Both the position numbers and the translations under genes were made by a program. From Thalia democratica (lineage: Eukaryota), in the NCBI GenBank assembly GCA_965202585.1, contig OZ241833.1, forward strand, positions 30,876,001 through 30,940,000: a DNA stretch of 64,000 nt, written 5' to 3'. The notes under the pieces were generated by a model. It made no database searches. It was not told the DNA's origin and worked only from the letters and a program-made list of their open reading frames with translations. Shown one piece after another: positions 30,906 through 63,680 of the stretch (position 1 is its first letter; every line of letters starts with the position of its first letter).

Positions 30906-33900
30906 ATGACCGAGTACCCGGGAATGTGCAGGGACGAAATGCTGACGTACGCCAGGAACAAGACCAACATCCACTCGGACGCCCACGGCAACCAGGACTA
31001 CAACGTTGAGATGCGGACCAAGGACCACTACGTGTTCACCAACGGCTTCGCCAGGGTCCACGTGCAGTTAGTTGTTGTTTGAATGTTGATAAATTAATAA
31101 ATAATAAATTTATTTTTTCTTTTAGTTTTACAGGGTTTTTTTGATTTTGTTATATGCTAATTACTTTTTTGTAACTGTTTTCAGTTTTTATTCTAGTTGC
31201 TACAAACTCCACAGACTTGCGGTATGTTGTTGATTTTGTTTTTTAAATTATAAAGAACAGAGTTATTAAGAATTATTTTGTTACAAAGTTTTATAATCTG
31301 TCCAAAATTAACTTGTCTGTCTGACAAGACGTTAAAAGGTATCCGTGGTGTGCAACTCGATAACTGAAAGATTCTTCGTGCACCAGGTCCTAAGACCAAA
31401 CATTTCAAGCGTATTTTTGTCGTTTAATAAACTATAACTTTATACAATTATTAATGGATTTGTCAGTGTAACTATTAATGTGGAATATATTATTATTTTT
31501 ATTTCTACAATCCCGTTCAAAATTAGTCAACTATCAAAAACAATATTTGTTTATTGAACGACAAAAAAGATGCTCAAAATTATTGGTCTTAGGACCTAGT
31601 GCACGAAGAACCTTATAGTTAGGTTACAGTATCTCAAGTATTAATGACTTTTTATGTGAACAATACATTGATGGGTTTGCTACAACAAACATTTTGATAA
31701 GACACAGCTGATAAAAGTTTGAGCGTTTTTTTTCTGATACTTTGCTGTGTGTTTGTAACAAGTATTTGTACATGTTACGTATTCACTTACAGATTTACTA
31801 TAGTCCTTTTTTTCTTTTAATTGTTTGTTAAATCTTTTAGTCTAACCTTTTACATAAATTGCTGTGTTTCAATATAAATAAATAAGTTTTATTTTAAATA
31901 TGTACAACTTTAGTTAATATTCACAATGTGTTTAATTTTCACTGAAATATTTGGAAGGTCTTTTAAACTATTTCTTCAATATTATCTGTTTAGCTAAAGC
32001 TAATTTTAAGTTTTATCATTTTTAAAATTGGTATGACAATATTCAAAATTTTTGATGTAAATATTTATTAAATCAAAAGATGTTCTATGTTAAGAAGCTG
32101 TATTTGTTTAAGATTAATCATTGAACAGCTAAAAGTTAATTATATATTTGAATTTTTTTTTTATTAAAACCATTAAATAAGTTTGAAACTTTGTATAAAC
32201 ACTATTAAATTGTGTATCAATACTCGAAAAATTTAAGTAGTAAATGATAAATTTACAATTTTAACATATTCCTTTATTGTTATAATGTTTTTGTTTACCT
32301 GTAGATGTTTTAAAAACTTATTAGCTTTAAAGCAGTTTGTGTCTTTATAGTAAATGCTGTGAGTCAGCAGACTTATTTATTTTAAATATTAATAGTTTTT
32401 ATTTAATTAGGGTGGACAGCATTTGACTTATACACGTTATTCTACTTAACTTAACTAAAACAAAGTTCAAAGTTATCTAAATGAAGTAGTAAAAATAATC
32501 AGTAGTATAGTAATATTTGAATTTAGCTCATATTTTTTAAGCTAAAAGCATTTTAAGTTTTCTTAATCAAACTATGTTAGTAAAGCTTGAAAAGTTTTGT
32601 AGAAGTGAAAATTAAAAACGAGCATAAAGTTATTGTTATAGGAAAATTTATTAATTTTTCAAAAAACATAAAACTTTAATGTCAATTATTTTCCTTATCT
32701 TAAAAGCTATCTAAAATTTTTTTTTTTATTTTAGAGAACGCACCTTTGCCTTTAATTAAAAAAAAAAATTATTTAATTTGGGGTTGGAATTATTTCATGG
32801 GGTCCCTCCAAAAATAAAGGTTTTTTTTTCGTTTTTTTTCATCAAATGGTATTAGAACCAAAAATAAATATTTTTTTTTAATTTTTTTTTTTTTATTTCC
32901 CTTAGTTTGCATGTTATAAAAACTCTTAAATAGTTATTTTAAAAATAATGTTAATATCTTTTACGATTTGGCCCAAAATCAAAATGTAGTATATTACACT
33001 ATCATTTGCCTTGGCCATTTCCTAGATAAAAAATTGATAAAAGGAAAAAAAAAGTTAATAAGAATGTGAATATACAACAAATTTAATTAAACTATTTTAT
33101 TTTAATTTAGTTTGATGTAATTCACATTCTTATTAACTTTTTTTTTCCTTTTATCAATTTTTTATCTAGGAAATGGCCAAGGCAAATGATAGTGTAATAT
33201 ACTACATTTTGATTTTGGGCCAAATCTTAAAAGATATTAACATTATTTATAAAATAACTATTTAAGAGTTTTTATAACATGCAAACTAAGGGAAATCAAA
33301 AAAAAAAAATTAAAAAAAAATATTTATTTTTGGTTCCAATACCATTTGATGAAAAAAAACGAAAAAAAAACCTTTATTTTTGGAGGGACCTCATGAAATA
33401 ATTCCAACCCCAAATTAAATAATTTTTTTTTTTAATTAAAGGCAAAGGTGCGTTCTCTAAAATAAAAAAAAAAAAATTTAGATAGCTTTTAAGATAAGGA
33501 AAATAATTGACATTAAAGTTTTATGTTTTTTGAAAAATTAATAAATTTTCCTATAACAATAACTTTATGCTCGTAAATTAAAAATGAATTTAAGAACAAA
33601 ATCATGTTTGTTTTTCTTTTCTTTGTTGAACAAACAGAAACATTTTTAACAAGGCTTAATTATATTAACCAAAACTTATAAAACTTTACACTAAAAAGTT
33701 TTACTATCGATAATAGTTCTACTATCATCGTTTATCAATAGTTTTATGATAATAGAATATGAGAAAAAACTTAAATTTAATAAAAAAAGGTCATTTAATT
33801 TTTGCCGGAAAAAAAGTAATACTTAGTACAAGCTTGGCTTGAAAGTTTATCTTTAAATTGTTAGCAAGCTAAACTTCAAAAGTAAACTTCCGTTAAGTTG

Positions 33901-42900: not shown

Positions 42901-45716
42901 GTGAAAATAGTACTTTTGTAAGTAGTTCCTTTTATATTTACGTAAATAACTTTTCTCGGAATTACCAAAATCCGAACTTATTTTTTTTAGTTCACTTTTA
43001 TTGTGTACGGACTGAAACGCGAGCCGAAACCGTCAGATATCGTACAACAGGCAGCAGATAATTTGCAGAAAAAGTAAGAATTGTTTGTGTGCTTTTTAAA
43101 TAAATTTAGCTACATAAGTTCAAATGTACAACAACTAATTTTAAGCTCTTTTTTATCAAAGCTATTATTTTATTCATTTTTTAACTGAAGAGCCCTACGC
43201 AAAATATATTGTCTTGTATTTTTGATTAAATTAGTTTTTAAACACTTATTACCAAATTTAGATTCTAAAATTTATTTTAGCAATGTTTTTTCATTAAAAC
43301 TTATTTTTTGTACCAAAAATAATTCTCAGCGTGGTGAACGAACTGAAAAGACATGACATCATGTGCGTGACGTCATCCACTGAAGTCCTGCATCGTGACG
43401 TCACAATGACGTTCACCCCGTCGGAGAACGACAAGACCGATGACGCCATCATGACTGAACAGTTTGTGGGTCGGTAGTTGTTTGATAAAACCGAATTTAA
43501 AACTCACCCAGCTGCATAAATCTGAATAATAAAGATTTTAACTTTTTTTTAAACCTTTTTTAAACTTTAATTGGATGTTTGAAAATTTTTAAGTAGAATT
43601 TATGTTTCTATTGTGTACCTATTATTTTTCAATAATTTTTTAAAAGATGAAAAGGTACCCTTTAGCAGAGGTTGTTCTTAGCTTTAAGCAAAACTTTCAA
43701 CTGTATGTAAACATCTTCATAGATATAATAAAAACTACTAATCCTAATGGATTTTTTTTTAATTCAGGTAACGACAGCAACCTTTTGGACCTGAGAAGTC
43801 CTTATGGCAATAGATTGCACAGAAAAACTTCGCATTACAGAAGGCATGACAGGTGATAAATTATCAAGATGTTTCATTTACCACCTTTTTAAATCTTATA
43901 CAGCATAATAGCAAGCGTGTCTCAAAAAAAAGTTTAACCAACAAACAAGTTAACTTTCTCAATGAGGTAAGAGAGAGTCTAATATGCATGAAGGGTCACT
44001 TTTGCACGAAAGGACATTTTTTACACGAAGACACTTTTGCACGGTTTAAAAATTTTTGTTCATTTTTTAGTTAAACTTTTTTTTTTACTATAACTATTAC
44101 CCCTAACCCTTATTATCGGTCGGTAACTTTTTCTTTTTTTTTGTTTTTTCATAATCAATTTTAATTATAATTTTTTGTTTAATAAGTTTTAATTTTTCTT
44201 TTTTGTTTAATATATTTTTTTTTAGTTACTGTTACCCCTAACCCTTACCCTTGGTCGGTAAGTTTTTTTTTTTGTAGTTTATTATATATCTATTTTTTCT
44301 CTTTTTTCTACTTTTTTTTGTTAGTTTTAATTATTTATTTTACTATCACTGTCACCTCTAACCCTTACCCTTGGCCGGAAACTTTTTTTTCTTGTTTTTA
44401 CTTTTGTGCAAAAATGACCCTTTGTGCAAAAGTGACCCTCCGTGCAAAAGTGTATTCGTGCAAAAACTTCCCTTCGTGCAAAAGTGTCTCTTCGTGCATA
44501 TTTGACCCTTTGTGCAAAAGTGTCTTCGTGCAATTTTGACCTGTTCCCGTCTCAATGAGCTATTTACTTGCAGTTAGGTAATTTAATTTTACCGTTTTAG
44601 AGTTTTGACCTCTAAACAACAAATTTAAGTATTTTAAAACCGAGTTTTTTTTTCAGGACTTCGGTGGTGTCCGCCATGGTGTCCATCGCCAGCCCCATCG
44701 CCAACATGACGACCACCAACCTGCACAGCAGCCATGGCAACCAGCAGCGCCACCACGCGCCCAAAACCCGGCGGGAGTTGAGGAGGGGCATACGTCACAG
44801 CGTGTGCGCCATGACGACCCAGGACCTCATGTCACGCGACACGTTGGGAGAAATGGTCTGTGACGTCACGCTGAAGAACGGGGGGTTGCCCATCGACACG
44901 CCGCCGACGACCGACGAGGCGGACGACGTCACTCACTCTTCCAACTGTGACGTCACGACGAGTAACAATGGGAAGCACGAGGAGTCGGTGCTGAAGTTTG
45001 TGAAGGAAACGCAGATTGCGAGACCTATGGGCCAGAGAACCAAGTTTGTTTTTATTTAGTACTTTTGATTACATGTTTTAATGATAATAGAAAAGAATTT
45101 AACTAGATCTTTTTAGTTACTTAATGTGTCATCTGAGTCTATTTTTTTTACTTTATATTCAAGTACGTTATTAGAATTTTTTAAACTGTTTCAATCTTTT
45201 TTTTTCTAAATACTTTATATGTTATTTGAAGTTTCTGAAAGTTAGCACTCTATTTTACGCTGCTCACATTTTTTACACAGTATGAAAAGCGATAGTCGTT
45301 AGTCTAAAAACTTAAAAAGCTTAACCTACAAACTTTGCAACTATTTTTGCTAATACATTTAATGATATAAGCACAAAAGTTATACAATTAAAAAAAAATA
45401 AAAGAATAAAAAGTTTAAAGCCGTGAAAACCAATAAACTAAAGAGTAACTAATCCTCAACAGTTTTACAAAAACTTATCAAATCAATTTCAACAATTTTC
45501 AGGCTTCGCAACTTCGTTATGTACCTGTTGGTTAGCAACGCATGCTTGTGGATATTTCAATCGCTGGAGGGCACCGCGTTCGACGTGCACCCCTACCCCA
45601 TGTTCTTCTACGGGGCCGAGGCTTGGACCACCGTTGTCATGGTGTGCCGCCCCCTCACAATTTTCTTCAGGATGCACTCGGCAGGGTGCCTGTTCGAAAT
45701 ATGGTCGTACGCTTGA
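30906..45716 (+). CDS. otop: Otopetrin family proton channel, complete, 790 aa, 14 coding exons
   Basis: Exons 30906-31066, 35595-35745, 36075-36222, 36841-37051, 38763-38893, 41266-41355, 41742-41933, 42128-42261, 42542-42787, 42991-43073, 43330-43469, 43768-43852, 44657-45043, 45503-45716 total 2373 nt, all phases compatible. Otopetrin motifs: RVGLMFLIGTNLSNW (cf. RFGLMH..ATN), FPFIIEFCLVAS (cf. YPFNIEY), LDVVLL, QFTFIVYGLKREP, NACLW, FYG...W, PLTIFFRMHSAGCLFEIW. Exon 1 is the least certain (linked by phase and codon bias only). Confidence 0.92.
31315..31620. repeat. Two oppositely oriented copies of the same dispersed short repeat
   Basis: 31315-31436 (GACAAGACGTTAAAAGGTATCCGTGGTGTG...GTCGTTTAATAAAC) and 31543-31620 (reverse orientation, shorter). 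Confidence 0.7.
32618..33574. mobile_element. Foldback element with about 454-bp inverted arms and 9-bp TSD (Mutator/Foldback-like), in otopetrin intron 1
   Basis: 32618-33071 is the near-perfect reverse complement of 33120-33574, with a 48-bp spacer. Direct repeat AAATTAAAA at 32609-32617 and 33575-33583. Confidence 0.88.
40685..41180. repeat. TTTTGCACGA / TAACCCTTACCC composite repeat family, copy 2
   Basis: About 9 TTGCACGA-type units, three CCCTTACCCT subrepeats, and inverted TCGTGCAAAA units at the right end. Confidence 0.8.
43972..44545. repeat. TTTTGCACGA / TAACCCTTACCC composite repeat family, copy 3 (both inverted end-blocks present)
   Basis: Left TTTTGCACGA block, three CCCTAACCCT(T/A) subrepeats, right block of TCGTGCAAAA/TTGTGCAAAA units ending GTGCAATTTTGACCTGTTCCC. 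Confidence 0.8.
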
Positions 45717-48700: not shown

Positions 48701-49080
48701 TTAGTTTTCAAACAACTTTAAATACAATATACATTAAAGTTTAAGCATTTTTAAATCTTATATATAAAAAATAGTTAAAATTACATTGGTAGAAAATAAA
48801 CATGTACTGTTTTTGTAAAGAAATATACTTCCAATATGTTTGAACAATTGCTTTGTTTTTGATGTACATTTGTTTTATTTAAAAAAAGCCTTTTTAAATA
48901 ATCTACTGCAAGCTTTGTTCAGTTTATTTTGAAATTCTAATGACTTTTTTTATTAAATGATGCAAACTACTTAAAAATAAATTTCATAAATGTTAATCAT
49001 TTCTTTTTCATTGAAAATATGAACTAATGCACTAAACATGATATGTTGGTTAAAAAAATAAAGCAAATAATTTATAATTA

Positions 49081-49853
49081 CAGTAACCTCTCGCATCTTT
49101 ACGCCTCGTGACGTTACGCACTCTCGTTTAGTTACGCATTTTAGAATTCTAAAAAATTCAAAATTTTTTATTTTTACTACTGCACAAACTAAGTTTAACG
49201 TATTTTTTACATTGAAATATGTTTTTAAATGCTAAGTCACCTCTCTATATCTTTAGACATTGTAAACTTATGTTTCTTGATTAATTGATAAACATTTAGT
49301 TATACCTCAGTACATCAGAAATTTCGTTAACAATAAGAGATTAAATTAAAATTATGAAACAAATATGACTGTGTCAAACAATGAAAATATAATGAAATAA
49401 TGAGAGTTTAAAATACAAATAAATAATACACCACTGTATATAGACATCACATCATTTTTTAATTGTAAACAAATGCTTAATTATGAATTGAATTTGCTAA
49501 GTAGAATAGAATATAAATGTTAAGTATCAAATAAGTAACATATAAATAAAGATAAACATAAAATCTACTTATTATTAAAGTTAGTAAAATTAATCTACAA
49601 GTATTGTTATTTTATGTAAATTTAAATCCTTTTTTAATAAATGTATAGTTTTATCTTTAGTTTTCATATTTAAAAAAAAAGTAAATAAATTTTTTAAAGT
49701 GGGAAAGTCCCCAGTCTGCTTTTAACCAGAAGCAATATCAAAAACAGCCATTATAGTAAGTATATTTGGTACCTCTCGTATCTTTACGATCTCTCGTATC
49801 TTTACGCACTTTTTCTGTGGACACAATGTGCGTAAATAAGCGAGAGGTTACTG
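49081..49853. mobile_element. Tc1/mariner-pogo-type MITE, 773 bp
   Basis: TIR CAGTAACCTCTCGC(A/T)T(C/A)TTTACG at both ends, TA on both flanks (49079-49080, 49854-49855), and internal copies of the TIR core near 49770-49810. Confidence 0.85.
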
Positions 49854-52139
49854 TACTAGCAAAATTTTTAACAAATTGCGTTTATTAAGTTTATACCAAT
49901 TCAGTGGTATATAAAACACATTTTTAACAATTAGAGCTAATTTTTATAAAGTTCATAGCTTTAATAATATTTGTTTACGCTTACCAAGTTGATTTTAAAA
50001 TGTTTTGGCAAAAATAGTTAGTTCTCTAATCAGTTATATGACTAAATAAAAACAAAGCTTGTTTTATATTAGCTTTTTTTAAATTATTAAAATTTTATCA
50101 AACTATTGACTTAAGATACAAGATTTTACAAAACAAAAAATCAAGCTTATAAACAAATTAATTATTAATGTTTATATAAAAGAGACACAGTTTGTTTTTT
50201 AAGATATAAAACTAGTGTATACTAGTCTAAAGTTTGAATAAAAGTATTATTTAATTACTCGAATTGATTCTCAAATTTTGATGTTTAACTTATAACTGTG
50301 TCTTAATTTACTACTTAGATAGTATAAAAGTATTTAGCTGTTTTCTTAAAACTAAATTTCACAAAAAATAGCTTTTATTTTAAAAAGTTTATTACAGTTT
50401 ATAGTCTAAACTTTATTAAGAATAATATACTTATTATTAAACGAATTAAAATTTGATTTAGATATAGTCTAACTCACTTTTCATTGCTAAACTATTTTTA
50501 AATACAAAAACAAAAAAGTCAACATTAAGACAAAAATTTTATGTTTTTTTCGAAGCTAACTTTGTAATTTTCTGAAAAATTACTTAGTAGATAAAGGTAT
50601 TGTTGTTGTGCATTTTATCAAGCAAACCTTACAAGCTATCTAGCTGAAAGTTTACAACTGCAAAATTCGATGCAAATTTTATTATATTTTCAGCTTAGCT
50701 ATTTACTGGCTAAAAGTATAGGTTTTGTGTAAAAATACCACTACCTATAACAAAAACATTTACTCTTGGTATCATGAGCTAAATTTTAAACTTAAGCTCG
50801 GTAATATAACAAAAAATAAGTAGGTAAACTTATAAGAACATTACAATATTAAGTATGTACTAATAAAACTTTTTTGGTGATCAATAAACTGTTTCAATAC
50901 TAAATATAGTTGAAAAATTTATTTCAACCAAACTAAGTCAACTATACAAAACCATCTTTATAATGCTAAAACTTCTTTTTAATATATAACAAGGTAAAAT
51001 TTTGTTTTTTTACAAACTTTTTGTTCATCATCCAAAGTTTTAAATAACTTTACTACTTAAAATAGTTCACTTTTATTTTATTGTTGAATATTTTTTGTCA
51101 ACATTTATTCTAAACACAAAAAAAGAGTGTTTTTTAAATCTAGCAATGCATTTGATACTATACTTAAATGTATTCTTTGAAAAAAATCTTAGTTTAAAGT
51201 TTCATTTGCTCTGCTTAATATTTTTTGAAAACACTTCTTAATATTTATTAAATTTTGCAGTCGTTAGAAGTTTAGAAAGTATTAACTTCAAAAACTAATT
51301 TATTTGATTCCAATATTTTTTTTGATCTTAATAAAAGATAGTTTATTAAGTTTGGATAAATTATGTAAAAATTTTCTAAAAAAACATTAATCTCTTTAAT
51401 GAATCATCCAAAATAAATTAAAGCAACTTTTTTACATATTATATTACGTTAAAAAACTAACTTACCAAAATCTTTTGTCTTTATGGTATTTTATTAGTAA
51501 GCTGAAGTTTCGCAAATATTTACAATTAGATAAGTAAATGAAAATGATGACTTAAAAAATGAACATTAAAAAAATGTCGTTGTTGAACTTTGACAAACAA
51601 AATAAAAAAAAAAATTTAAGCATTCAGTTTTTATATTTGTTAGAAACCAATACTGTTTTTATCGTTTATGTACTCTTTTTTAGCTGTATGACGATAGTTT
51701 TCAAAACTTTTAACAGTTGTGTTATTAAATAGTTAGTTAAAAGATGGTTAGTTTTTATAAAATCTGAAGTTATTTTGAAAACAATCAGGTTGATTATTCT
51801 TTATTTATAAATCTAGTGGTATTTTACGACAAAAAAAATTTATAATTTAATTTTTAGTAGTTATGCTTCAACCTAAAAGTTTCAATTAGAACTAATTAGA
51901 AACTTTATTGCTACAAATTAGAACAGTGGTAATATTAGTTTAAATCAAAAAATACATAAACAATGGCCAAAAAGTTATTTAAAAAATAAGATGGTGAGTT
52001 AAAACTATTTTTTAGTGTTATTTTAGCAGCTTATACAATTTTCAATATAAACTGTATTATACATCTTTTTGTTTGCAATAGCTGTCCCTGCTGTGAAATC
52101 AAAAAAAGTACTTTTATCAACCTAAGCGTTATAATCTAA

Positions 52140-52543: not shown

Positions 52544-55500
52544 ATGTCCTCAGATGAGGGAACCCCTTCTAAATCTCAAAATGAAACTAACAGTAAGTCT
52601 TTAATTTATTTTGTTCAGATTGATTTTGACAATATATACCAAAGTAAACAGTTATTAGGCTATTCATAAAAAATTATCCATATAATTCTTTTAATCAAAT
52701 AAAGAGTAGAAATTAATTTATCTGATATTTAACTATGATTTCATTAATTAATAAGTTAATGTCATTTAGTAGAAATTCTAAATAATAGCATTAATTAAAT
52801 TAAGAGTTTGAATACAGTAATTCTAAATCATGTTGTAATTTTGGTGCATGGCTGTTTACAAAGAACATATTACCATCACTACACAACTAGAGTCTATCTA
52901 TATCTCATAGGACTAATTATAACATAAAATACTGATACCAAATTGTAAAATGTTTCAGTACATATATCATTTGTGTATGTTTTCCAAATCGATTTTCAAT
53001 TTGTCATTTTTCTTAATGTGCATGCATGTAAGCTTTAAGTAGTGTATTTAATCAATATCAGATGTCAACTAAAACAAAGTAACTTATTGTTGCTCTCTGC
53101 ATCTTAAACTAAGAAGTGTTCATGTATGAAATTGTTATTTCAATTTAACAAATTCTGTTACTTATTGAAAGAATGAGATGTCTAAATGTAGTACCTAAGC
53201 TAATGATAAATTTTCTATTTCAAAATGTAAGATATAGCCTAAGTTTAATTTATTTGTTTATTTTTTTTTTAATTTGTAAGAGACACCAGTACATAAATTT
53301 GTGCAAATATTACAAACAGTATCTGTTCAAGACATGTTAATGTATCCAAGTTTTTATTCATCTCGAATTGTGTAGAAAAATTCTCCCATTGGTGCCTCTC
53401 TTAAACATCTAAAACCTTTAACCATTAGTTATAGCAAACCCACAGCATGTATTTCTTCAGCTCTGCAGAATTTTTAAGCTTTTCCTAATAACTTGGTCAT
53501 CCACAAACATAGAATTGATAATTTGAAATAAAAATGCATATGTTAAATGTTAACTTAAGTATACATATCAGGTAAAAATTAGACATAATTATATAAAGAG
53601 TATTGAGTTTTTTTTCACAGATTAGCATTATAATGTTAAAACCATAGTGAAGTTCATTAAGGGGGTCTGATACATAACAAATGTTTACAGATATTAGAAC
53701 AAGTTTTCACTCATTTAATAGAATATTTAGATTTGAAAACATTAAGTTTATTAATCACATAATTAATTTTGTTGAGTATTCATTATAAAAGAAATTAGTA
53801 TTAACCTATTTCTGCAAATAGTACTAGTTGTGCCAATTGTAATATTTTTTTATAGTAAATGAAATTTATTGAAAGATATATGTTAAAATTTACAAACATC
53901 ATATTAATTTAAAAAATAAAAAACATATTGTTCTCTCAGTACTGCAATACACTTTGTACTTAAAGGTAGACTATTAAAAAAAATAAAACTTGGAATCTTA
54001 AATAAACTAACACTACTTGGACCAAGTGATCAAAAATTTTAAGCCACCTCAATATTAGTGAATGACATTTAAATCATAACTAACACATTGTGTATATTAA
54101 ATAATTGTTGAATTATCATAAAATGTTAAAAAATTAATCATCATGGTAACTTATGTATAGAATGCTATACAATATGTGTTGCAAACTTGATAGATGTAAG
54201 CCAGCAATTAAGTATAGCAAAATAATGACATAACATAAATGTTCTGATCAACAAACAATTCACAGCACATGCATCTGGCAGGGCAAGGAGGCAAAAGTCT
54301 GCCAGGTACAACAAGAGGCAGGCAGCCCTGGAAAAACTTCAGCAGTCCAAGTTGACTGGGAGCAGAGCCAACCCTGATGTTAGTTGAATTGATAGTTTCA
54401 CCAAAATGTTTTTTAAATAAAAAATCAATGTTTCATGTTTGAGCTACAACTGCAGTGAATTTGTTTGAATTGAGTTTTATATTAATATTTGTAAGATAGT
54501 CAAAACCTGTCAGAAAAGATTTTTTATTAGTTATAATAGCTAGCCCAAGCTGGGAATATTTTTACTCTTAAAAAGTGCTAAAGTTTGAGCCTGATGGAAA
54601 AACTGGGCAATTTTAATGAATTTTATAATGACAACATCAGTAATTTAAAAAGATGTACTTGTATAGTTAATTTTAAATTTTTTTTAAACATCCATATAAG
54701 TTGATAAATCTTTGAGGAATAAATGAATTGTATATATATATATATAATATATAACTATATATATATATATGATTGAAGCTTATATTAATGTATGCCTAAG
54801 AAATAATGAAACAGTAAAGAACACTAATGTATTTTGATACTTGATTTAAACCTAGCTGTTAGCTTTCTATTAAGTATAAAGAAGAACAGCTTTTTTGAAC
54901 ATGGTTTTGAACACCCCTAATGCCTAGAAAAGCTAAAGTTTTAACAATTTGCATGTATAATAATTAACCCAAAAACACAAGAGATGTAAGTAGATCAGTT
55001 GTACCCTCTTATGGTGTTTTTTGAAATAATAAGTCCATTCTACCTCTAAAATTTTTAATAATTTACTTTTAACCACAGGAAGAGCAAATAGATGACTTGT
55101 ATGAGACTGTTGATGAGGAGGAATACTCAAGGAGGGTGGAGGAAAGATTAGAGGATGACTGGATTGAAGATGATGGCACTGGGGACTACATTGATGACGG
55201 CAGGGAGATATTTGATGATGAAACGGCTGAGAACCGGGCACACAACAGGAGGGAGCAGCAGAAGAAGCAGGCTGTAGATGCTGAGAAGGCAGCGAGGAAG
55301 GCTGCAAAGAAGAAGACAATCAGCAAAATGGTCAAGAGTGGTGATATTCAGAAGATGCTGTCTGCTGCTAAGAGGACCCATACAGTGAGTTTTAATCTTA
55401 TTTATGTAGTATGTGGTGCTCAAAAAGGGATAAGTTAGATGAGAGTATCAAGTTTTAAATTTTAAATATAGCTTAAGTTTGTATTAATTGACTACTGCTG

Positions 55501-58500
55501 AAGCTAAAAATTTTGAAATTATCAATGAATCAAAACTAAATTCAAAATTGGAAGACATAATTAAATAAATTTTTAATCAATTTTCAGACAACAAAAAAAG
55601 AGGCATTCAAGAAAGATGACATGCTTGATGACATCATGGGAGAACTGGGTGGCTCTGATGATGTCATAGAAGAACCTAAAATATACACCCACCACAGGAA
55701 GCCGGTTGCTAGGAAACAGACCCCCTCAACCAGCAGCCAGTGGAGGAAGCCCCAGCTTAAGAAGAGGGTGTCAACAAGCTTAATGAAGCAGAACAGACCT
55801 CAGCAGGTGAAAATGTCTCCTGCCAAGCCACCTACACCTCCACCATTGATCAGGAAACCAATTGATGAACCTGTTGAAATAAATGTAAGTATTGAAAGTT
55901 AAATATAATGTTTATAAATTCTAATAAATTGAAACTGTTTTTACAATATGCTGTTTTTTAAAGTTAAATGAAAAAATATCTAAAAGTTTGATTCTACATG
56001 TTGGCAGAAATTTTTATAGACATTTTGCTTTCAGGAGGAATTTGAAGCAGAAATGATGGAAATGCCAGATGATTTTGACTCTGTTGAGCCCATGGTACAT
56101 GACAACTCTCCACCAGAGAAGAAAATTAAACTGGAAGCTGAGCAACCTGCTGCAAGTGAGTCTCACCATCATGATTTTGATGATGATGATTTCGCCGACA
56201 TTGATTTCGATGATGACATCCTGGAAATTGATGCTCCTGTGCCTAAGAAGGAAATCAAAATTGTTAGTTATTTTTGCAATAATCTTATACTCAAGAAAGT
56301 GTTTTAAACTTACAGAATTTTCTAGAATTTATCAGATATTCATAGATAAGTTTTCATTATCAAGTTTTAACAGCTTATAAATATCGGAGGTAATAAAAAA
56401 GTTATATGATGGAGTGTAATACTAAAAAATAGTTTTAGCCACAAGTCTGCAAATGAAGCTTTAAATTCAATCTGAACTTTTTAGGAGCCCAAACAGCCCA
56501 AACATGAGTGGGATGGAAAGTTGAAGTTTCAAAACGTCCAGCAGCAAACCAATAACATACCAGTTCAGCATGGAAAGTTACCAGTAAAAACTGAGAATGG
56601 TGAACAAGTTAGTTTTGGCATTATAAAATTAACTCGGTCTTTAATAATGTTTTTATAAGTAAGAATTAATAGCTATTGAAAAAAGTAAAAAAAAACTCTT
56701 GTTCTTGTCGTTCTTAAGAAGAATAAAACATAAAATTGTGAGTAATTTGGTAGTATAAGGCAGTTATACTCCACCAGAAAAATAAACTTGATTTCATTGA
56801 CAGGTACTGAAGTTCTTCTGGTTGGACGCCTACGAAGACCAGTACAAGCAGCCTGGCTGCGTCTATCTGTTTGGCAAGGTCCACTGCGACAAGTCTGACA
56901 GGTACCTCAGCTGCACGGTGGTTGTCAAGAACATCGACAGGATGTTGTACCTGCTGCCTAAAGAAAAGGGAGACGGTGAAAGGTATGAGATATCTGAAGT
57001 TTACCAGGAAGTCAATGAGGATATTGAGAGCAAATATGGCCTTAAAGTCAGCTCCAGGGACGATTTCACATACAGGACAAAGGTAAATTCTTTAGAAATA
57101 TAGTTGATAACAATTGACTAGTTAATAAAAATAGATTGGAATTAAAATTATTAATCTACAGATGCCTGAGATGAGAAATGTGTTTGCTGCAAATGATGTG
57201 CCCAGGGACAAGACTCAATACCTGCAGATTTCCTACCCAGCAAAGTATGGTCGTTTCCATGAAAACGTGAGGGGCAAGACTTTCTCCCACGTCTTTGGCA
57301 ACAATTCCTCAGCCCTTGAACTTTTGCTGCTTGAGAGGAAGATTAGGGGACCAAGCTGGCTAACCATCACCAAGTTTGTGTCAAAAGGTGAGTTGTGTGC
57401 TGAATTGATTGCTTGAAAACAAACTTTGGTATAAATAGGACCAAGTTAAAGGTATTTTATAAAACAATTTATATCAGTAACATCTTTTATGTTTCTACAG
57501 CCCATTTAGGATCGTTTATGAGCCACAGCAAGTTTGAGTTGGAAGTGAATTCTCCAAAAAGCGTCACAGTGGACACCAAACTGACTTCAGTCCCGCCCCT
57601 CTCCGTTCTCACCATCAATCTGGTCACGGTTCCCAACCACAACACTAATCAGAACGAGGTTTGTTATGGATTATAAATATTTAAGGAGTGTTTTTTAAAT
57701 AAATGACTGTTGAAATAACCTTAGTGTTTTTATACTAAAAAAAAAAATTGCATACTTAATCAACAGATTGTTGGAATTGCAGGACTGATACACAATGCGT
57801 TTCCAGTGGACAAGCCAGCTCCAAAACCAGCATTCAACAGCACCTTCTTTGGTGAGTTTCACATTTATAAATAACACATTGACAGATAAGCACATAAAAC
57901 AGTTCAGTACAGTGTGAAGCTCAGTGCAGTCTTGTCATTAGTAGTTAGCAGTAGTTAGTTGTAAAACTGAAGTTAAATCAGGATAAAAAGGGGGCAGGAT
58001 AATCAGGCGTAAACATTTGTAGCACCATTTACAGGCGAATCGCATCCTTGTCACTGTTAGTCATTTTCTTGTGCATCGGTTGTCATGGTAACTATTGCAC
58101 AAGTGAATGACCCCCTGTGACAGAGGACCACACTTCACAAAGAAAATCTTGAAGAAGACTTCAACATTGTGTAAGTGATGTTTCTTGTTTAATTAAAATA
58201 AGTAAATAACATAACTATTATATATCTGTTACTATTGGGCTTATAAATGAGCAATTTTCTGCGAGGAAACTCATTGGGCAACCCAAAACATTGAAAATAT
58301 TTTGTATTGCACAATTAGTTTCCCCGTGGACTGTTTGCACAAACTTCTTCAAGGTTTCATCCACAGTTGGGAAAAATTTTACTACTACCTAGGCAGACAA
58401 TTTGAAGTGACGTTCCACCAAGAGGCTCACCTCTCGAGGGGGCTGTGGGTAGGATTTCTCTTGTGCTATAGCTCGAATTTTGGCGGCTATTGCATAAGAG

Positions 58501-61500
58501 ATTCCCGACCACGGCTGCCCGCTTAAAGAGGTGAAACGAAGACGTATGTATTAAATGGCAGTCGGATGGAGGCGGGAGTTCGTGTAAGACATCTTTTGCG
58601 TGTTTTGTGACGTCACAACAGCTGGTGTATTGCACGGAAATTCCGCCCGCATCAGGCTGACCATAAACCCTACCAAGCAGAAAGAAGATGGTTGAAAAAT
58701 GTTGGTTTACAATAAACTCTAGTATTATATTAATATATTTTAACCATCTAGTTACTGTAACTTAATTAGTCAAATTTAATTACTGAATTTTAATAGCTGA
58801 AAAGGTTGAATATTTAGTACATTCTGAGCGGTTGGGCCTGGTGTGGGTTAGTGCAAGGCAACAGGTGACGAAGTTTCACCCAACTTGTATTGCACTAATA
58901 CACGCCAGGGCCCCACTGCATCACCATGACAACACGCCCCAACCACCACCATGGCAGCAAGAAACGCAGAAAACAAGGAGGTCTACATTCGGCAAGAACT
59001 CGCGCAACTACTTACCTCTGTGACGTATTAATACCGATCTCATTGTGTCGTAATTGCACGAGGTCTTGCCCGATTTATTCCTGCCACTGACTCGTCTGTA
59101 AATGGTGCTATTAAAAGTTTTTGAAATTACTAAATGGTTTGAATTTTAGATTTGTTAGATACTATAGAGATTTCAAGTAAGCTTGTTTTTTAGATTTATT
59201 GTCAGAAATATGAATTAATTTGTCCGCAAATTTCAGTGAAGGTTTACCTTAGAATATAGTTTTATCAATTAATTATTGTTTCCGTAAAGACGAAGGTTGG
59301 TTAAAAGCTAGGTTTGTAAGTAAACAGCGCCAGAGTGTATTTTTATGAAACAAATATATAAAGGAGTATTTATGTTTATGTTAGCTGAATTTAAACATTT
59401 TCTGAATAATTTTAGTAAGCTTAATTAAATTGTTGCAAACAGAAATATTTATTGTTTAGACACAAATAAAAGATAAGTTAACAGAAAAAGTTGAATATTT
59501 CCAGTTTGATGGTTAAAAACTTGAACATGATTTAAAAAAATATCAATTTTCAGATAGTTAGTCTGATATGAAAATAAGTTATACATAGTAGTAAGGAGAA
59601 TATAGATTGCTAAGAATAGAAAATAACATTGTAAAAAATAAAATTAATAATACATGGTGTAAATGCATACACAACTTATAAAACTGTATACAAATGTAGA
59701 TAGGATTTTTTTCTTATAGACAGCATCAGACAGCATATTTTATGAAAACTTTATGCAAGTGAAACAGTTAAAGTTTTGTTTAAAATGTTTTAATATGTAA
59801 AAGTTTTGAGTTTCATACAAGCACAAGTATTGATAATCAAAATATTTTGTACCATCATTTTTTGTTTAAACTTATTGTAAGTTATATGTTGCATGTATAA
59901 TTGAGTTGTGAGCTTAATAATTTACAACTATTCTAAAACAAATTTTAAAATTAAGGTTAACCAAGATTTTACTTAATATTTAATGTTGCTTTAATGTGAT
60001 CGTGTGATTGTTGGTTGCGTGATAAATTTCTGAAAACTTTGTAATTTTCTCAGCGCTGACCAAACCAAAGAACTGTCTGATACCGTTCGACTTCAAAGAC
60101 GAGGCCAAGAAAAAGAACTATGACGTATCAATATCGATGAATGAAAAAGATCTGCTCAAGTTTTTCCTGGCCAAGCTCGCACAGGTTTGCTTGTTAAACA
60201 TTTATATATTTTTACTATCAATATTGTATTTGTATTAAAGAGAATAACAAAAATAGCTGCTTCATGAACAGTTATACTGGAATATTCAGTTTTTTAAATC
60301 TGAATATAATTGTTTGTTACACAATTAAGACAAGATAAGTATTGGTTAAAATCACTTAGTACTATTACAGTTTCATATAATAAAATGGTTTGTTTACGTA
60401 TTATACAAGGTTACTATGGAATAAAATGTTAATATTTTGTCTTCAGTATAAGTATGCTAATGACACAAAGTTAGAAAAAATGTTCATTTGTTTTTACTTA
60501 AACTTTAAAGGTGGTTAAAACTAATTGCAAAAATCTGGAAATTAGTTAAAATGTGTTTTTTTCTGCACCATTAGTCAAGTTTGTAAAATGCTAATTGTCA
60601 ATCTTTTCATCAAAACAAAAATAGTACTACCTAAAATGCACAAAAAATTTTTTTAGAAAACAGTAGAACAGTAAATAACTTATTATATATTTTAATAAAC
60701 AAAATTAAATTTAAGATAAATGGTGCTTAAAAAGCTTTTTTATCACTGTAAAAAGATTTTCTATTATTAAAAAAAAAAAACGATATTTTAGTGAAACTTT
60801 TTTTTCATTAAATTGAAACAAATGTTTAAAATTTTTTGAATTTTTTTTTCACAGATAGACCCGGATGTGATTATGGGTCACGATCTGGTGGACTTTACAT
60901 TGGACGTCCTTTTAACCAGAATGTCAAAGCACAACGTGGACAACTGGTCCAGATTGGGCAGGCTCAAAAGAAAGTTCATGCCCAAGTTGAAGGTTTGTAA
61001 TTTGTTAACTTTTCTGATGCTGGTATTTTCCGCACGTAACCGAAGTACTTATAAAAATCTCCAGCTTTTTACAATGGAACTAGAACAGATTGGTGTGAAA
61101 ATAGTGGCACCGCTCTGTTTTAGTTCCACTGTAAAACACTGAAAAATCTGCAAAAGGTACTTTCGCGCTCTCTGTTTGAGGAAACTGAAAAGGCGTTTGA
61201 ATCTGTATGTAAGTTTGTTAGACTAAACATAATTTGAATATGAATATCATTATTTTATTTGATCTTTAAAAAAATAAAATTCTAAAAATAGAAAAGTGCA
61301 CATACTTTTTGTTATAAATATGGCTGATGATGAGATTTATAGTAAATTATGACAAACTTTTTATTTGAATTTACTGAAAAAGTTTACAACTCCGCTATTA
61401 ACATATTGGAATTTTATTGGTGAAACTGTAAGTTCAGTAGCAGAAAGGGGAGTTACTATTTAAAAACCAATAAAATCTAGTTGTTGTGAAGGATTACAAA

Positions 61501-63680
61501 CTGATAACATCTTTTGTCGAGCTTAAGTTGTAAACATGTCAAAATAATTTGTGATTTTGTACGGCTTAAAATGACCTTAACCTTAGTTTGAAGATAGTTC
61601 TGAAGTAAAAGCTTTTGTATAAATAAAGTAAAGCAGTTCCAAAAATCTAAAAAAGTAAAATTACACCAGAATGTTTTTTTTGTTTCATAATTATAAACTT
61701 ACAACTCAAAAACAAATTAGCTTAATGTTTTATATTGATCTTGTTATTTAATTAACAAGTTAAATCATTTTAAATACTATGAAACAAAACTGAGTAAAAT
61801 TTCTCTTTAATAATTTTTTGTAAGTTTAAGTCAAATTAAACATTTACTTGGATACAACATTTTTTAAAGTATTTAATATTTAATTCTTTGTAGTTGTTGT
61901 TACTGTTCTAAAGTTTTACCAATGTGTTTAAATTGTTATTAGTATTAGTGTATACCATTTTTCAGTTTTTAAAACAACCTGTATCTCATTCTAAACTTAA
62001 TGGAACTGATTACAATACCTTTTCAAACTCTTAAAAAAATTACAACTAATATTTAGCATTTATACCTAGAGCTTAATTAAAAGAGGTTCAATATCAAGAG
62101 TTAATTATTGTAGAATTCATAATTTGATAAACATTTAATAAATAATTTAATGACTAAAACAACAATAACCATAAATATCCATGACTTCAAAACCCCATTA
62201 TGTGTTTTTATATATAAAATTTAAAAAAATATATAATGATTAGTATTAAAATACATCCAGGTATAAAGAAGTGAGCCAAAATTAAGTTTAAATGTTTAAA
62301 AATAGTAAAGTTTGACTATATTTAAACACTTGATATAAATAATTGACAAAAATAAATTGTATTCTTAGTTAGAAAAAACCTGTATCTCATTCTAAACTTA
62401 ATGGAACTGATTACAATACCTTTTCAAACTCTTAAAAAAATTACAACTAATATTTAGCTTTTATACCTAGAGCTTAATTAAAAGAGGTTCAATATCAAGA
62501 GTTAATTATTGTAGAATTCATAATTTGATAAACATTTAATAAATAATTTAATGACTAAAACAACAATAACCATCAATATCCATGACTTCAAAACCCCATT
62601 ATGTGTTTTTATATATAAAATTTAAAAAAATATATAATGATTAGTATTAAAATACATCCAGGTATAAAGAAGTGAGCCAAAATTAAGTTTAAATGTTTAA
62701 AAATAGTAAAGTTTGACTATATTTAAACACTTGATATAAATAATTGACAAAAATAAATTGTATTCTTAGTTAGAATTGAATATAAAAGAGTATATTAGAA
62801 ATACATGTATTTAAAAGACCTAAAATATATTTTTTAACATATAACCAGACTTTAAAATAAATGATGTTTTGAATATTACTTAATACAACACTTAAAGTTA
62901 TACAATTATTTTCAACTACATATATGCATGGTAGGAAACAAGATTTAAAAATTTATTGCAAAATAATCTGAGCATAATTTCTAATCAAAATAAAGGTTAA
63001 ATGGCTTAAATTAAAAGGAGTTCTTATCAAATTGGAACACTAGAATTTTTAGTAATACATTTTAATAATAAATAAACTAAGGCCACATTGGCTGGCAAGC
63101 GAATCAAGCTAGGTGTTATACTTACTTATTTACTACAGGATTTCTTCTATTGAAAACTGTGTTTGATTTTTTAATGTTTGAATTATTTTATTAAAAAACA
63201 CTATATCTCGAAATTATTAAGACATTTATTTTTTTATTGTAAACAATTGCTTTTTTCTACTTGAATTCAAAGGTGCTTTCAGAGAAATGCAAAGTTTTTA
63301 AGGGACACGCAGCTCAAGTTTCCAACTAGAACCCTTTTTTTTCAACCTAAAATTACAAAAAATATTCTGACTGATGTCACATTAATTTAAAAAAAAAATA
63401 GACTCTTACAGTTATGAGTTTTTTAAACTACTTATTTTAATTTTTGGTAATCAAAATATACATTCAACAACATATCTTATTTGAGAATAGTTGTAAACAT
63501 GCAGGGCTTCACCAAGATGGTTGATCGCCTGGTTACATCCGGGCGTGTGTTGTGCGATCTGAAGATTTCCGCCAAGGAGCTGATAAGGTGCAAGAGCTAC
63601 GACCTGACCACTCTGGCGCAACATGTTCTCAACCAGGGACGCATGGAGCTGAAACCGGAACTCGTGCCGTCCATGTACAA
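52544..63680 (+). CDS. POLA1: DNA polymerase alpha catalytic subunit, 5' part (continues beyond the window)
   Basis: Exons 52544-52592, 54266-54378, 55079-55384, 55588-55884, 56035-56262, 56485-56607, 56804-57082, 57162-57387, 57501-57658, 57767-57851, 60054-60184, 60855-60992, 63505-63680 are in frame. Peptides recalled as matching POLA1: [48 protein letters not shown]...[56 protein letters not shown]. Confidence 0.96.
58046..58126 (+). ncRNA. Candidate pre-miRNA 1, miR-92 family (3p UAUUGCACAAGUGAAUGACCCC, 58093-58114)
   Basis: Arm 58060-58082 pairs with 58089-58111 (about 20 of 23 positions including G-U), with a 6-nt loop and a lower stem tgtcac/gtgaca. The 3p arm starts with seed AUUGCAC. 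Confidence 0.8.
58259..58329 (+). ncRNA. Candidate pre-miRNA 2, miR-92 family (3p UAUUGCACAAUUAGUUUCCCCG, 58305-58326)
   Basis: 30-position stem (ctgcgaggaaactcattgggcaacccaaaa / ttttgtattgcacaattagtttccccgtgg) with 5 single mismatches and an 11-nt loop. Seed AUUGCAC is on the 3p arm. Confidence 0.8.
58438..58520 (+). ncRNA. Candidate pre-miRNA 3, miR-92-like seed variant (3p UAUUGCAUAAGAGAUUCCCGAC, 58488-58509)
   Basis: gctgtgg/ccacggc lower stem, ctcttgtgc/gcataagag core, atagct/ggctat upper stem and an 11-nt loop. Seed reads AUUGCAU. Confidence 0.75.
58561..58657 (+). ncRNA. Candidate pre-miRNA 4, miR-92 family (3p UAUUGCACGGAAAUUCCGCCCG, 58628-58649)
   Basis: gatggaggcgggagttcgtgtaagacatc pairs with ggtgtattgcacggaaattccgcccgcatc. 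The roughly 30-nt loop is itself structured (ttgtgacgtcacaa palindrome). Confidence 0.78.
58828..58919 (+). ncRNA. Candidate pre-miRNA 5, miR-92 family (3p UAUUGCACUAAUACACGCCAGG, 58888-58909)
   Basis: gggcctggtgtgggttagtgcaaggcaa pairs with ttgtattgcactaatacacgccagggccc. The 23-nt loop has an internal ggtga/tcacc stem. Confidence 0.8.
58987..59075 (+). ncRNA. Candidate pre-miRNA 6, miR-92 family (3p AAUUGCACGAGGUCUUGCCCGA, 59052-59073)
   Basis: tcggcaagaactcgcgcaactac pairs with gtaattgcacgaggtcttgcccga (3 mismatches, 1 bulge). The loop is large (about 38 nt) and the seed is AUUGCAC. Confidence 0.7.
61067..61136 (+). ncRNA. Isolated pre-miRNA-like hairpin in a POLA1 intron
   Basis: 61067-61096 pairs with 61107-61136: 30 positions, 2 mismatches, 3 G-U pairs, 10-nt loop. 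I recognise no known seed. Confidence 0.45.
61976..62775. repeat. Near-perfect 401-bp tandem duplication in a POLA1 intron
   Basis: 61976-62374 is repeated at 62377-62775. I see two substitutions (tagcatt/tagcttt, accataaat/accatcaat). Confidence 0.92.

Follow-up and report, generated by a model that had tools for sequence, protein, structure and literature searches.

The POLA1 Intron and Its Inverted Repeat

We analyzed a 64,000-nucleotide (nt) stretch of the Thalia democratica genome (GenBank assembly GCA_965202585.1, contig OZ241833.1, positions 30,876,001 to 30,940,000 of the forward strand; hereafter, the window, in whose numbering positions are given), in which an inverted repeat at 58020-59110 brackets an array of six microRNA (miRNA) hairpins. 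The repeat and the hairpins lie together within one intron, and the exons flanking this intron on the + strand, which were searched one at a time, read as DNA polymerase alpha (POLA1). A Pfam DNA_pol_alpha_N match was also obtained on a collinear metagenome contig. The 5′ end of the repeat is located 166 nt past the 5′ splice site and its 3′ end 943 nt before the 3′ splice site. A closed helix would loop out about half of the intron.

The six hairpins between the arms are stable (folding z-scores from −3.8 to −6.3) and all are in sense orientation. They have the size of pre-miRNAs, and five of the six carry AUUGCAC, and hairpin 3 AUUGCAU, as residues 2-8 of the predicted product of the 3′ arm, which places the array in the miR-92 seed family. 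AUUGCAC, with the UAUUGCAC-type start, is the seed of the miR-25/92/363 family.

The two arms were found by a repeat search of the window. Each is 22 nt long, 20 of the 22 positions are paired (91% complementary), the spacing is 1047 nt, and 58042/59088 may form a 23rd pair. Only 3-4 nt separate the predicted helix from the basal stems of hairpins 1 and 6. The original prediction had described a 19-bp helix, composed of 17 bp and the flanking TA, whose only difference was a G-U pair. The repeat is real and this version corresponds to its outer part, the complementarity extending 3 nt further inward. The pairing map confirmed the G.U pair of the + strand at 58035/59095, but revealed in addition, further inward, an A.C mismatch on the + strand at 58039/59091, a position which forms a G.U pair on the − strand. 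The reference thus contains one wobble and one mismatch on each strand, and shows by itself no strand asymmetry: the strand argument drawn from the single G.U pair fails in the reference alone and holds once the related lineages described below are added. Both arms were recovered in the independent read sets X1, X3, and X5 as well as in metagenome contigs, which excludes an assembly artefact.

Table 1. Coordinates of the predicted closing helix, the miR-92-type hairpins, and the host intron with its flanking exons. dG: predicted folding free energy; z: folding z-score.
Feature	Position	Strand	Remarks
5′ arm of the predicted closing helix	58020..58041	+	Inverted-repeat search, pairing map, lineages B and D; scored in read sets X1 and X3 and unchanged there
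3′ arm of the predicted closing helix	59089..59110	+	Inverted-repeat search, pairing map; 0/22 changes vs. lineage B
Hairpin 1	58045..58127	+	3′ arm starts with miR-92-type UAUUGCAC; dG −37.5 kcal/mol, z −5.2; 1-2 changes in lineages B and D
Hairpin 2	58251..58338	+	UAUUGCAC in 3′ arm; z −4.1; 3/88 changes vs. lineage B
Hairpin 3	58431..58530	+	UAUUGCAU variant; z −5.2; 4/100 changes vs. lineage B
Hairpin 4	58555..58664	+	UAUUGCAC; z −6.1; 4/110 changes vs. lineage B
Hairpin 5	58825..58923	+	UAUUGCAC; z −6.3; 2/99 changes vs. lineage B
Hairpin 6	58977..59084	+	AAUUGCAC; z −3.8; 3/108 changes vs. lineage B
POLA1 host intron	57854..60053	+	2,200 nt, GT..AG
Upstream POLA1 exon	57806..57853	+	Ends at 57853 before gtgagt; conserved in lineages B and D
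Downstream POLA1 exon	60054..60184	+	Starts after tttctcag; reads in frame

Conservation of the Arms in Related Lineages

Relatives of the locus were identified by a word search with a neighbouring POLA1 exon, which returned ORFs on marine-metagenome contigs, mostly from Tara Oceans. They belong to two lineages, whose sequences are not present in the window's own genome. Lineage B is represented by a contig covering the whole array (L047, spanning 56846-59413) and by three contigs covering its 5′ part (L050, L051, and L053), and lineage D by three contigs (L041, L044, and L045). The array and its arms were found at the same POLA1 intron site in these lineages, lineage D being seen through hairpin 1 only. 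A word search with the downstream exon (60056-60184) for the 3′ side of lineage D gave no match.

Between lineage B and the window, substitutions affect 2.9% of hairpin positions and 10.9% of those in the spacers and intron, and indels are also present. The upstream intron of lineage D is marked by 34% substitutions and 51 gap columns. The 5′ arm of lineage D is identical to that of the window at 21 of 22 positions in all three contigs, the difference being at the outermost base, and is followed by an A at 58042. In all four lineage B contigs, which originate from different samples, the 5′ arm carries A>G changes at 58021 and 58027. Position 58042 is again an A in these contigs, and the TA is lost through a deletion of 5 nt immediately beyond the arm. 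The 3′ arm of lineage B is unchanged: the sequence is identical over the 28 nt from 59085 to 59112, and six changes were found in the next 22 nt. None of the other hairpin flanks is identical over so long a stretch, and conservation ends 2 nt past the outer edge of the arm. The other upstream hairpin flanks are identical to those of lineage B for 2-6 nt only and, thus, ordinary flank conservation of a primary miRNA transcript (pri-miRNA) does not explain the 24-nt block found upstream of hairpin 1 in lineage D.

The polarity of the changes was set by the agreement of two of the three lineages. Three derived changes were obtained, each of them an A>G that faces a U in the 3′ arm. Two of these, at 58021 and 58027, belong to lineage B, and the third belongs to the reference, at 58042, where read set X1 is still polymorphic. 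Each of the three keeps the pair on the + (miRNA) strand and creates a C.A mismatch on the − strand. Given the substitution spectrum of the region, pairing would survive a random change within a pair with a probability of 0.29, so that three pairing-retaining changes out of three correspond to p ~0.025, or ~0.08 when the loss of the terminal pair is included as a further event.

Folding predictions gave a concordant picture. The duplex energy of the + strand is −35.3 kcal/mol in the reference and −33.4 kcal/mol in lineage B, and that of the − strand goes from −33.3 to −27.7 kcal/mol. The helix closes both the minimum free energy and the centroid folds in the reference and in lineage B, and 21 of its 22 positions have a pair probability of 0.9-1.0 in the ensemble of the whole 2,200-nt intron. 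On the transcribed strand, the hairpins are thus flanked at both ends by complementary segments able to engage in long-range pairing.

Frequency of Comparable Inverted Repeats

A repeat of this kind might have arisen by chance in AT-rich sequence, and the window does contain 54 inverted repeats whose arms match exactly over 13 nt or more and lie no more than 2 kb apart, mostly low-complexity A/T or obvious repeats. However, the arms studied here have a GC content of 45%, and loci that combine a match of at least 20/22, a GC content of at least 0.35, and a distance within 2.1 kb are restricted to four independent ones in the 64 kb. Among these four, only the 58020-59110 repeat flanks a miRNA array on either side at a distance of a few bases. 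The chance of such an array-bracketing placement was estimated at ~1e-5 or less, and the repeat was kept across lineages. A chance origin, the probability of which we regard as negligible, is already refuted by this placement and conservation.

The original prediction had also envisaged a DNA transposon as the vehicle or the generator of the miRNA cassette, the arms being its terminal inverted repeats (TIRs) and the TA its target duplication. A miniature inverted-repeat transposable element (MITE) would be one such case. The locus does resemble MITE and Tc1-mariner-type elements by its geometry, with an inverted repeat, a TA at both ends, and a unit of ~1.1 kb, and the genome is rich in MITE-like inverted repeats with comparable spacing, for example, at 49079-49855. 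The dinucleotide TA is palindromic, hence it forms part of the inverted repeat and does not constitute separate evidence for a target duplication. Moreover, when the 802-Mb genome was searched for copies of the arms, the 13-mer arm core gave only seven matches, the two arms themselves and five others sharing nothing beyond the 13-mer. With the 22-mer and up to three mismatches, the two arms were found at 0 mismatches, together with nine unpaired matches at 3 mismatches, a chance level given that the reversed control gave five, and the 1,151-nt unit was present as a single copy. Two other GC-containing inverted repeats of the window, used as positive controls in the same 13-mer test, gave 5,242 and 3,065 matches. 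As these control repeats yielded thousands of matches, the test works, and the 58020-59110 repeat has no TIR family. This search is the one that the original prediction had proposed to separate a transposon from a structural clamp.

The surroundings of the repeat also differ from those of a transposon. On the 5′ side, the TA is replaced by AG in lineage B, following the 5-nt deletion, and by CA in lineage D. An empty TA site in relatives, which had been suggested as a further check, was not seen: neither an empty site nor an empty-site joint was observed in the four read sets or in any related contig, and the site is filled in all lineages. No transposase gene or interior related to an autonomous element was found between the arms, the single-copy interior consisting of the six hairpins and AT-rich spacers. 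Lastly, the array is old, and over such an age neutral TIRs should have been eroded in the same way as the flanks. Unlike MITE and Tc1-mariner-type elements, the locus is single copy, lacks typical termini, a conserved TA, and an empty site, and has arms that appear to be under selection. We therefore consider it very unlikely that the arms are transposon TIRs, and this part of the original prediction is largely refuted. An ancient transposable element origin, followed by exaptation, is still conceivable. More generally, an inverted repeat around a miRNA array need not imply a transposon origin, even in a MITE-rich genome.

The two repeats that served as controls each belong to an abundant family. 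The arms of the 49079-49855 inverted repeat start with TACAGTAACCTCT, and its 5,242 genome matches mostly form +/− pairs ~720-1,130 nt apart, commonly ~800 nt, defining an abundant MITE family with Tc1/mariner-like TA-CAGT ends. The other control, at 31372-31610, is a 21/22 inverted repeat whose 13-mer GTGCACCAGGTCC accounts for the 3,065 matches, and represents another abundant repeat family. The window also contains a large near-perfect foldback (32618-33574), the inverted arms of which total ~450 nt in exact blocks of 21-98 nt, and a cluster of CACTTTTGCACG-type motifs present in both direct and inverted orientation (43985-44533). A similar TTTTGCACGGAG motif flanks an unrelated match in L001.

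Other Features of the Hairpin Array and Its Intron

Little is shared among the six hairpins beyond the seed, which indicates that the array is old, and their alignment with MAFFT was structurally poor. None of the microRNA families of Rfam 15 matched any hairpin at E up to 1 in the region 55000-62000. Lineage-specific paralogues of a deeply conserved miRNA family can escape curated models. Scans of the Joint Genome Institute (JGI) metagenomes with the products of hairpins 1 and 6 gave no match. A canonical miR-92 sequence, with one mismatch to the vertebrate/fly-type product, is present at C9:44247371-44247391, 13.3 Mb downstream on the same chromosome piece (L054), and a second ATTGCAC lies 310 nt beyond it.

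A shorter inverted repeat (58144-58157/58344-58357; 14 nt, 93% complementary) surrounds hairpin 2 alone. It was considered as a second clamp, but it is broken in lineage B by three changes in the 5′ copy and is probably not functional. The spacers are prone to indels at 58716-58751, 58722, and 58957, with a 36-nt deletion in lineage B and a 5-nt insertion and a 9-nt deletion in X1, the hairpins being intact. A contig joint in X1 (57978 to 58285) skips 306 nt that include the 5′ arm and hairpin 1. Its shorter side is just 21 nt long, and it is probably an assembly-graph artefact at a repeated seed sequence. Finally, no match was found for two intronic open reading frames (ORFs) by exact look-up in public assemblies, or for a 92-amino-acid intronic ORF by word search.

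A Candidate Closing Helix and Alternative Explanations

Our favoured explanation, which we hold to be fairly probable, is that the two arms form a conserved RNA helix that closes the six-hairpin array into one domain, and that this stem has been maintained by selection. Such a helix, and selection for it, gain support from the conservation of the arms, from changes that are wobble-only on the + strand, and from the predicted folds, in line with the first of the two readings put forward in the original prediction. In the sense intron transcript, which would be the primary miRNA transcript, the arms are predicted to pair over 22-23 bp (~−35 kcal/mol). With a gap of only 3-4 nt, this long-range helix would abut the basal stems of the two outer hairpins, 1 and 6, and the array would become one closed multibranch domain.

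The stem that would close the cluster is probably under selection; as to its function, we infer that the most likely role would be to provide an insulated folding unit within an AT-rich intron and to keep the intron remnants paired after the Microprocessor cuts. The helix may also modulate the cropping of the outer hairpins 1 and 6, since their outer flanks would be double-stranded when it is closed, and could change the access of the Microprocessor to them much as the repressed conformation of pri-miR-17~92 does. It probably arose from a short inverted copy or from the basal stem of an ancestral hairpin, and would have been maintained since. The additional proposal that the helix draws distant intron ends closer offers a weak rationale, because the intron measures just 2,200 nt, of which about half would be looped out, and only 166 and 943 nt separate the helix from the splice sites. 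An unlikely, though conceivable, variant is a tether that stitches the intron: once the Microprocessor has excised the six hairpins, the 22-23 bp duplex would hold the exon-bearing remnants together and shield the newly formed ends, so that POLA1, an essential gene of DNA replication, would still be spliced. Such a tether, if true, would be a cis-encoded answer to the conflict between the cropping of intronic miRNAs and the splicing of the host gene.

Several observations weigh against a selected closing helix. Transcription reaches the 3′ arm ~1.07 kb later than the 5′ arm, and co-transcriptional cropping could therefore precede helix formation. The wobble argument comprises three substitutions only (p ~0.03, and ~0.08 with the terminal pair), and the A.C mismatch at 58039/59091 is old and unrepaired. 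Compared with lineage B, the arms show 2/43 changes, a value compatible with either the hairpin or the spacer rate. No two-sided compensatory change was seen, the comparison with lineage D covering the 5′ arm only. In addition, the canonical miR-92 locus at C9:44247371 has neither a GC-containing flanking inverted repeat nor a comparable clamp, so that the clamp is not a general feature.

Some of these points would also suit the main rival explanation, which we consider possible but rather doubtful, that the repeat is a neutral relic, a one-off inverted copy generated by a template switch or an inverted duplication. Each arm would then be preserved separately, not through pairing but through a local constraint, for example Microprocessor or splicing-factor motifs beside hairpins 1 and 6. 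Flank conservation of ~15-20 nt is indeed also present 3′ of hairpins 1, 2, and 3, CNNC-type motifs can be read in the hairpin flanks, and the absence of a double compensatory change and the persistence of one A.C mismatch are in keeping with such a relic. However, it would require two independent constraints whose extents match, on either side, that of the complementarity. Two further points count against it: upstream hairpin flanks are otherwise kept for just 2-6 nt, and all three derived changes (3/3) are wobble-compatible on the transcribed strand. A kinship of the arms with a miR-29-type miRNA, of which the 3′ arm would be the complement or target site, was also considered, as TAGCACCATTT (58020-58030) would correspond to the first 11 bases of miR-29b/c, with its complement at 59100-59110. 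The 3′ arm, which holds the seed match, is unchanged in lineage B, but the seed itself is altered there by A>G at positions 2 and 8. No local hairpin forms at either arm on either strand (z ~0), and no mir-29 gene was found among the 62 scored of ~120,000 genome candidates. This kinship is thus highly improbable, and we judge the resemblance to be a coincidence.

Comparison with Known Systems

Most animal miRNAs come from clusters, many of them intronic. The control of processing by the shape of a whole primary transcript has been worked out in only a handful of instances, above all miR-17~92. A limited full-text search of the literature, which is not proof of novelty, turned up no description of a helix around an entire miRNA cluster, nor any report of a link between miR-92 and POLA1 in tunicates.

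Complementary segments within introns, such as the "zipper" stems of yeast and the RNA bridges of animal introns, are known to loop out intron sequence. The helix described here would likewise be a stable one inside a single intron, shortening the effective distance between the splice sites. In contrast to zipper stems, the looped part corresponds exactly to the miRNA array, and, in a 2.2-kb intron, distance alone would be a weak rationale. In split trans-spliced introns, for instance in Giardia, long complementary stretches hold two intron pieces together for splicing, and the clamp could, by analogy, hold two remnants after cropping. The two systems differ in that the halves of split introns are transcribed separately, whereas the POLA1 remnants would arise by Microprocessor cleavage.

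The closest parallel is offered by pri-miR-17~92 (oncomiR-1), with its 5′ and 3′ repression domains and compact fold. There, a stretch upstream of the hairpins associates with one close to the 3′ end, in a conformation that governs the access of the Microprocessor (PMC5766152; PMC4005684); the former report also cites a "progenitor miRNA" model. Like the POLA1-intron array, which we compare with it on the basis of sequence and predicted folds, pri-miR-17~92 is a six-hairpin polycistron with miR-92-seed members, and in the POLA1-intron array, too, a 5′ region is predicted to associate with one near the 3′ end. The association in pri-miR-17~92 consists of partial pairing or a tertiary contact which leaves miR-92a outside, whereas the POLA1-intron array would be surrounded by a simple, near-perfect helix of 22-23 bp around all six hairpins. 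Furthermore, all members of the POLA1-intron array are of miR-92 type, its host is an intron of a protein-coding gene, and there is no homology beyond the seed. The enclosing helix is probably a novel form of the long-range pairing described for pri-miR-17~92, and a simple conserved helix enclosing an entire cluster would constitute a clean natural test case.

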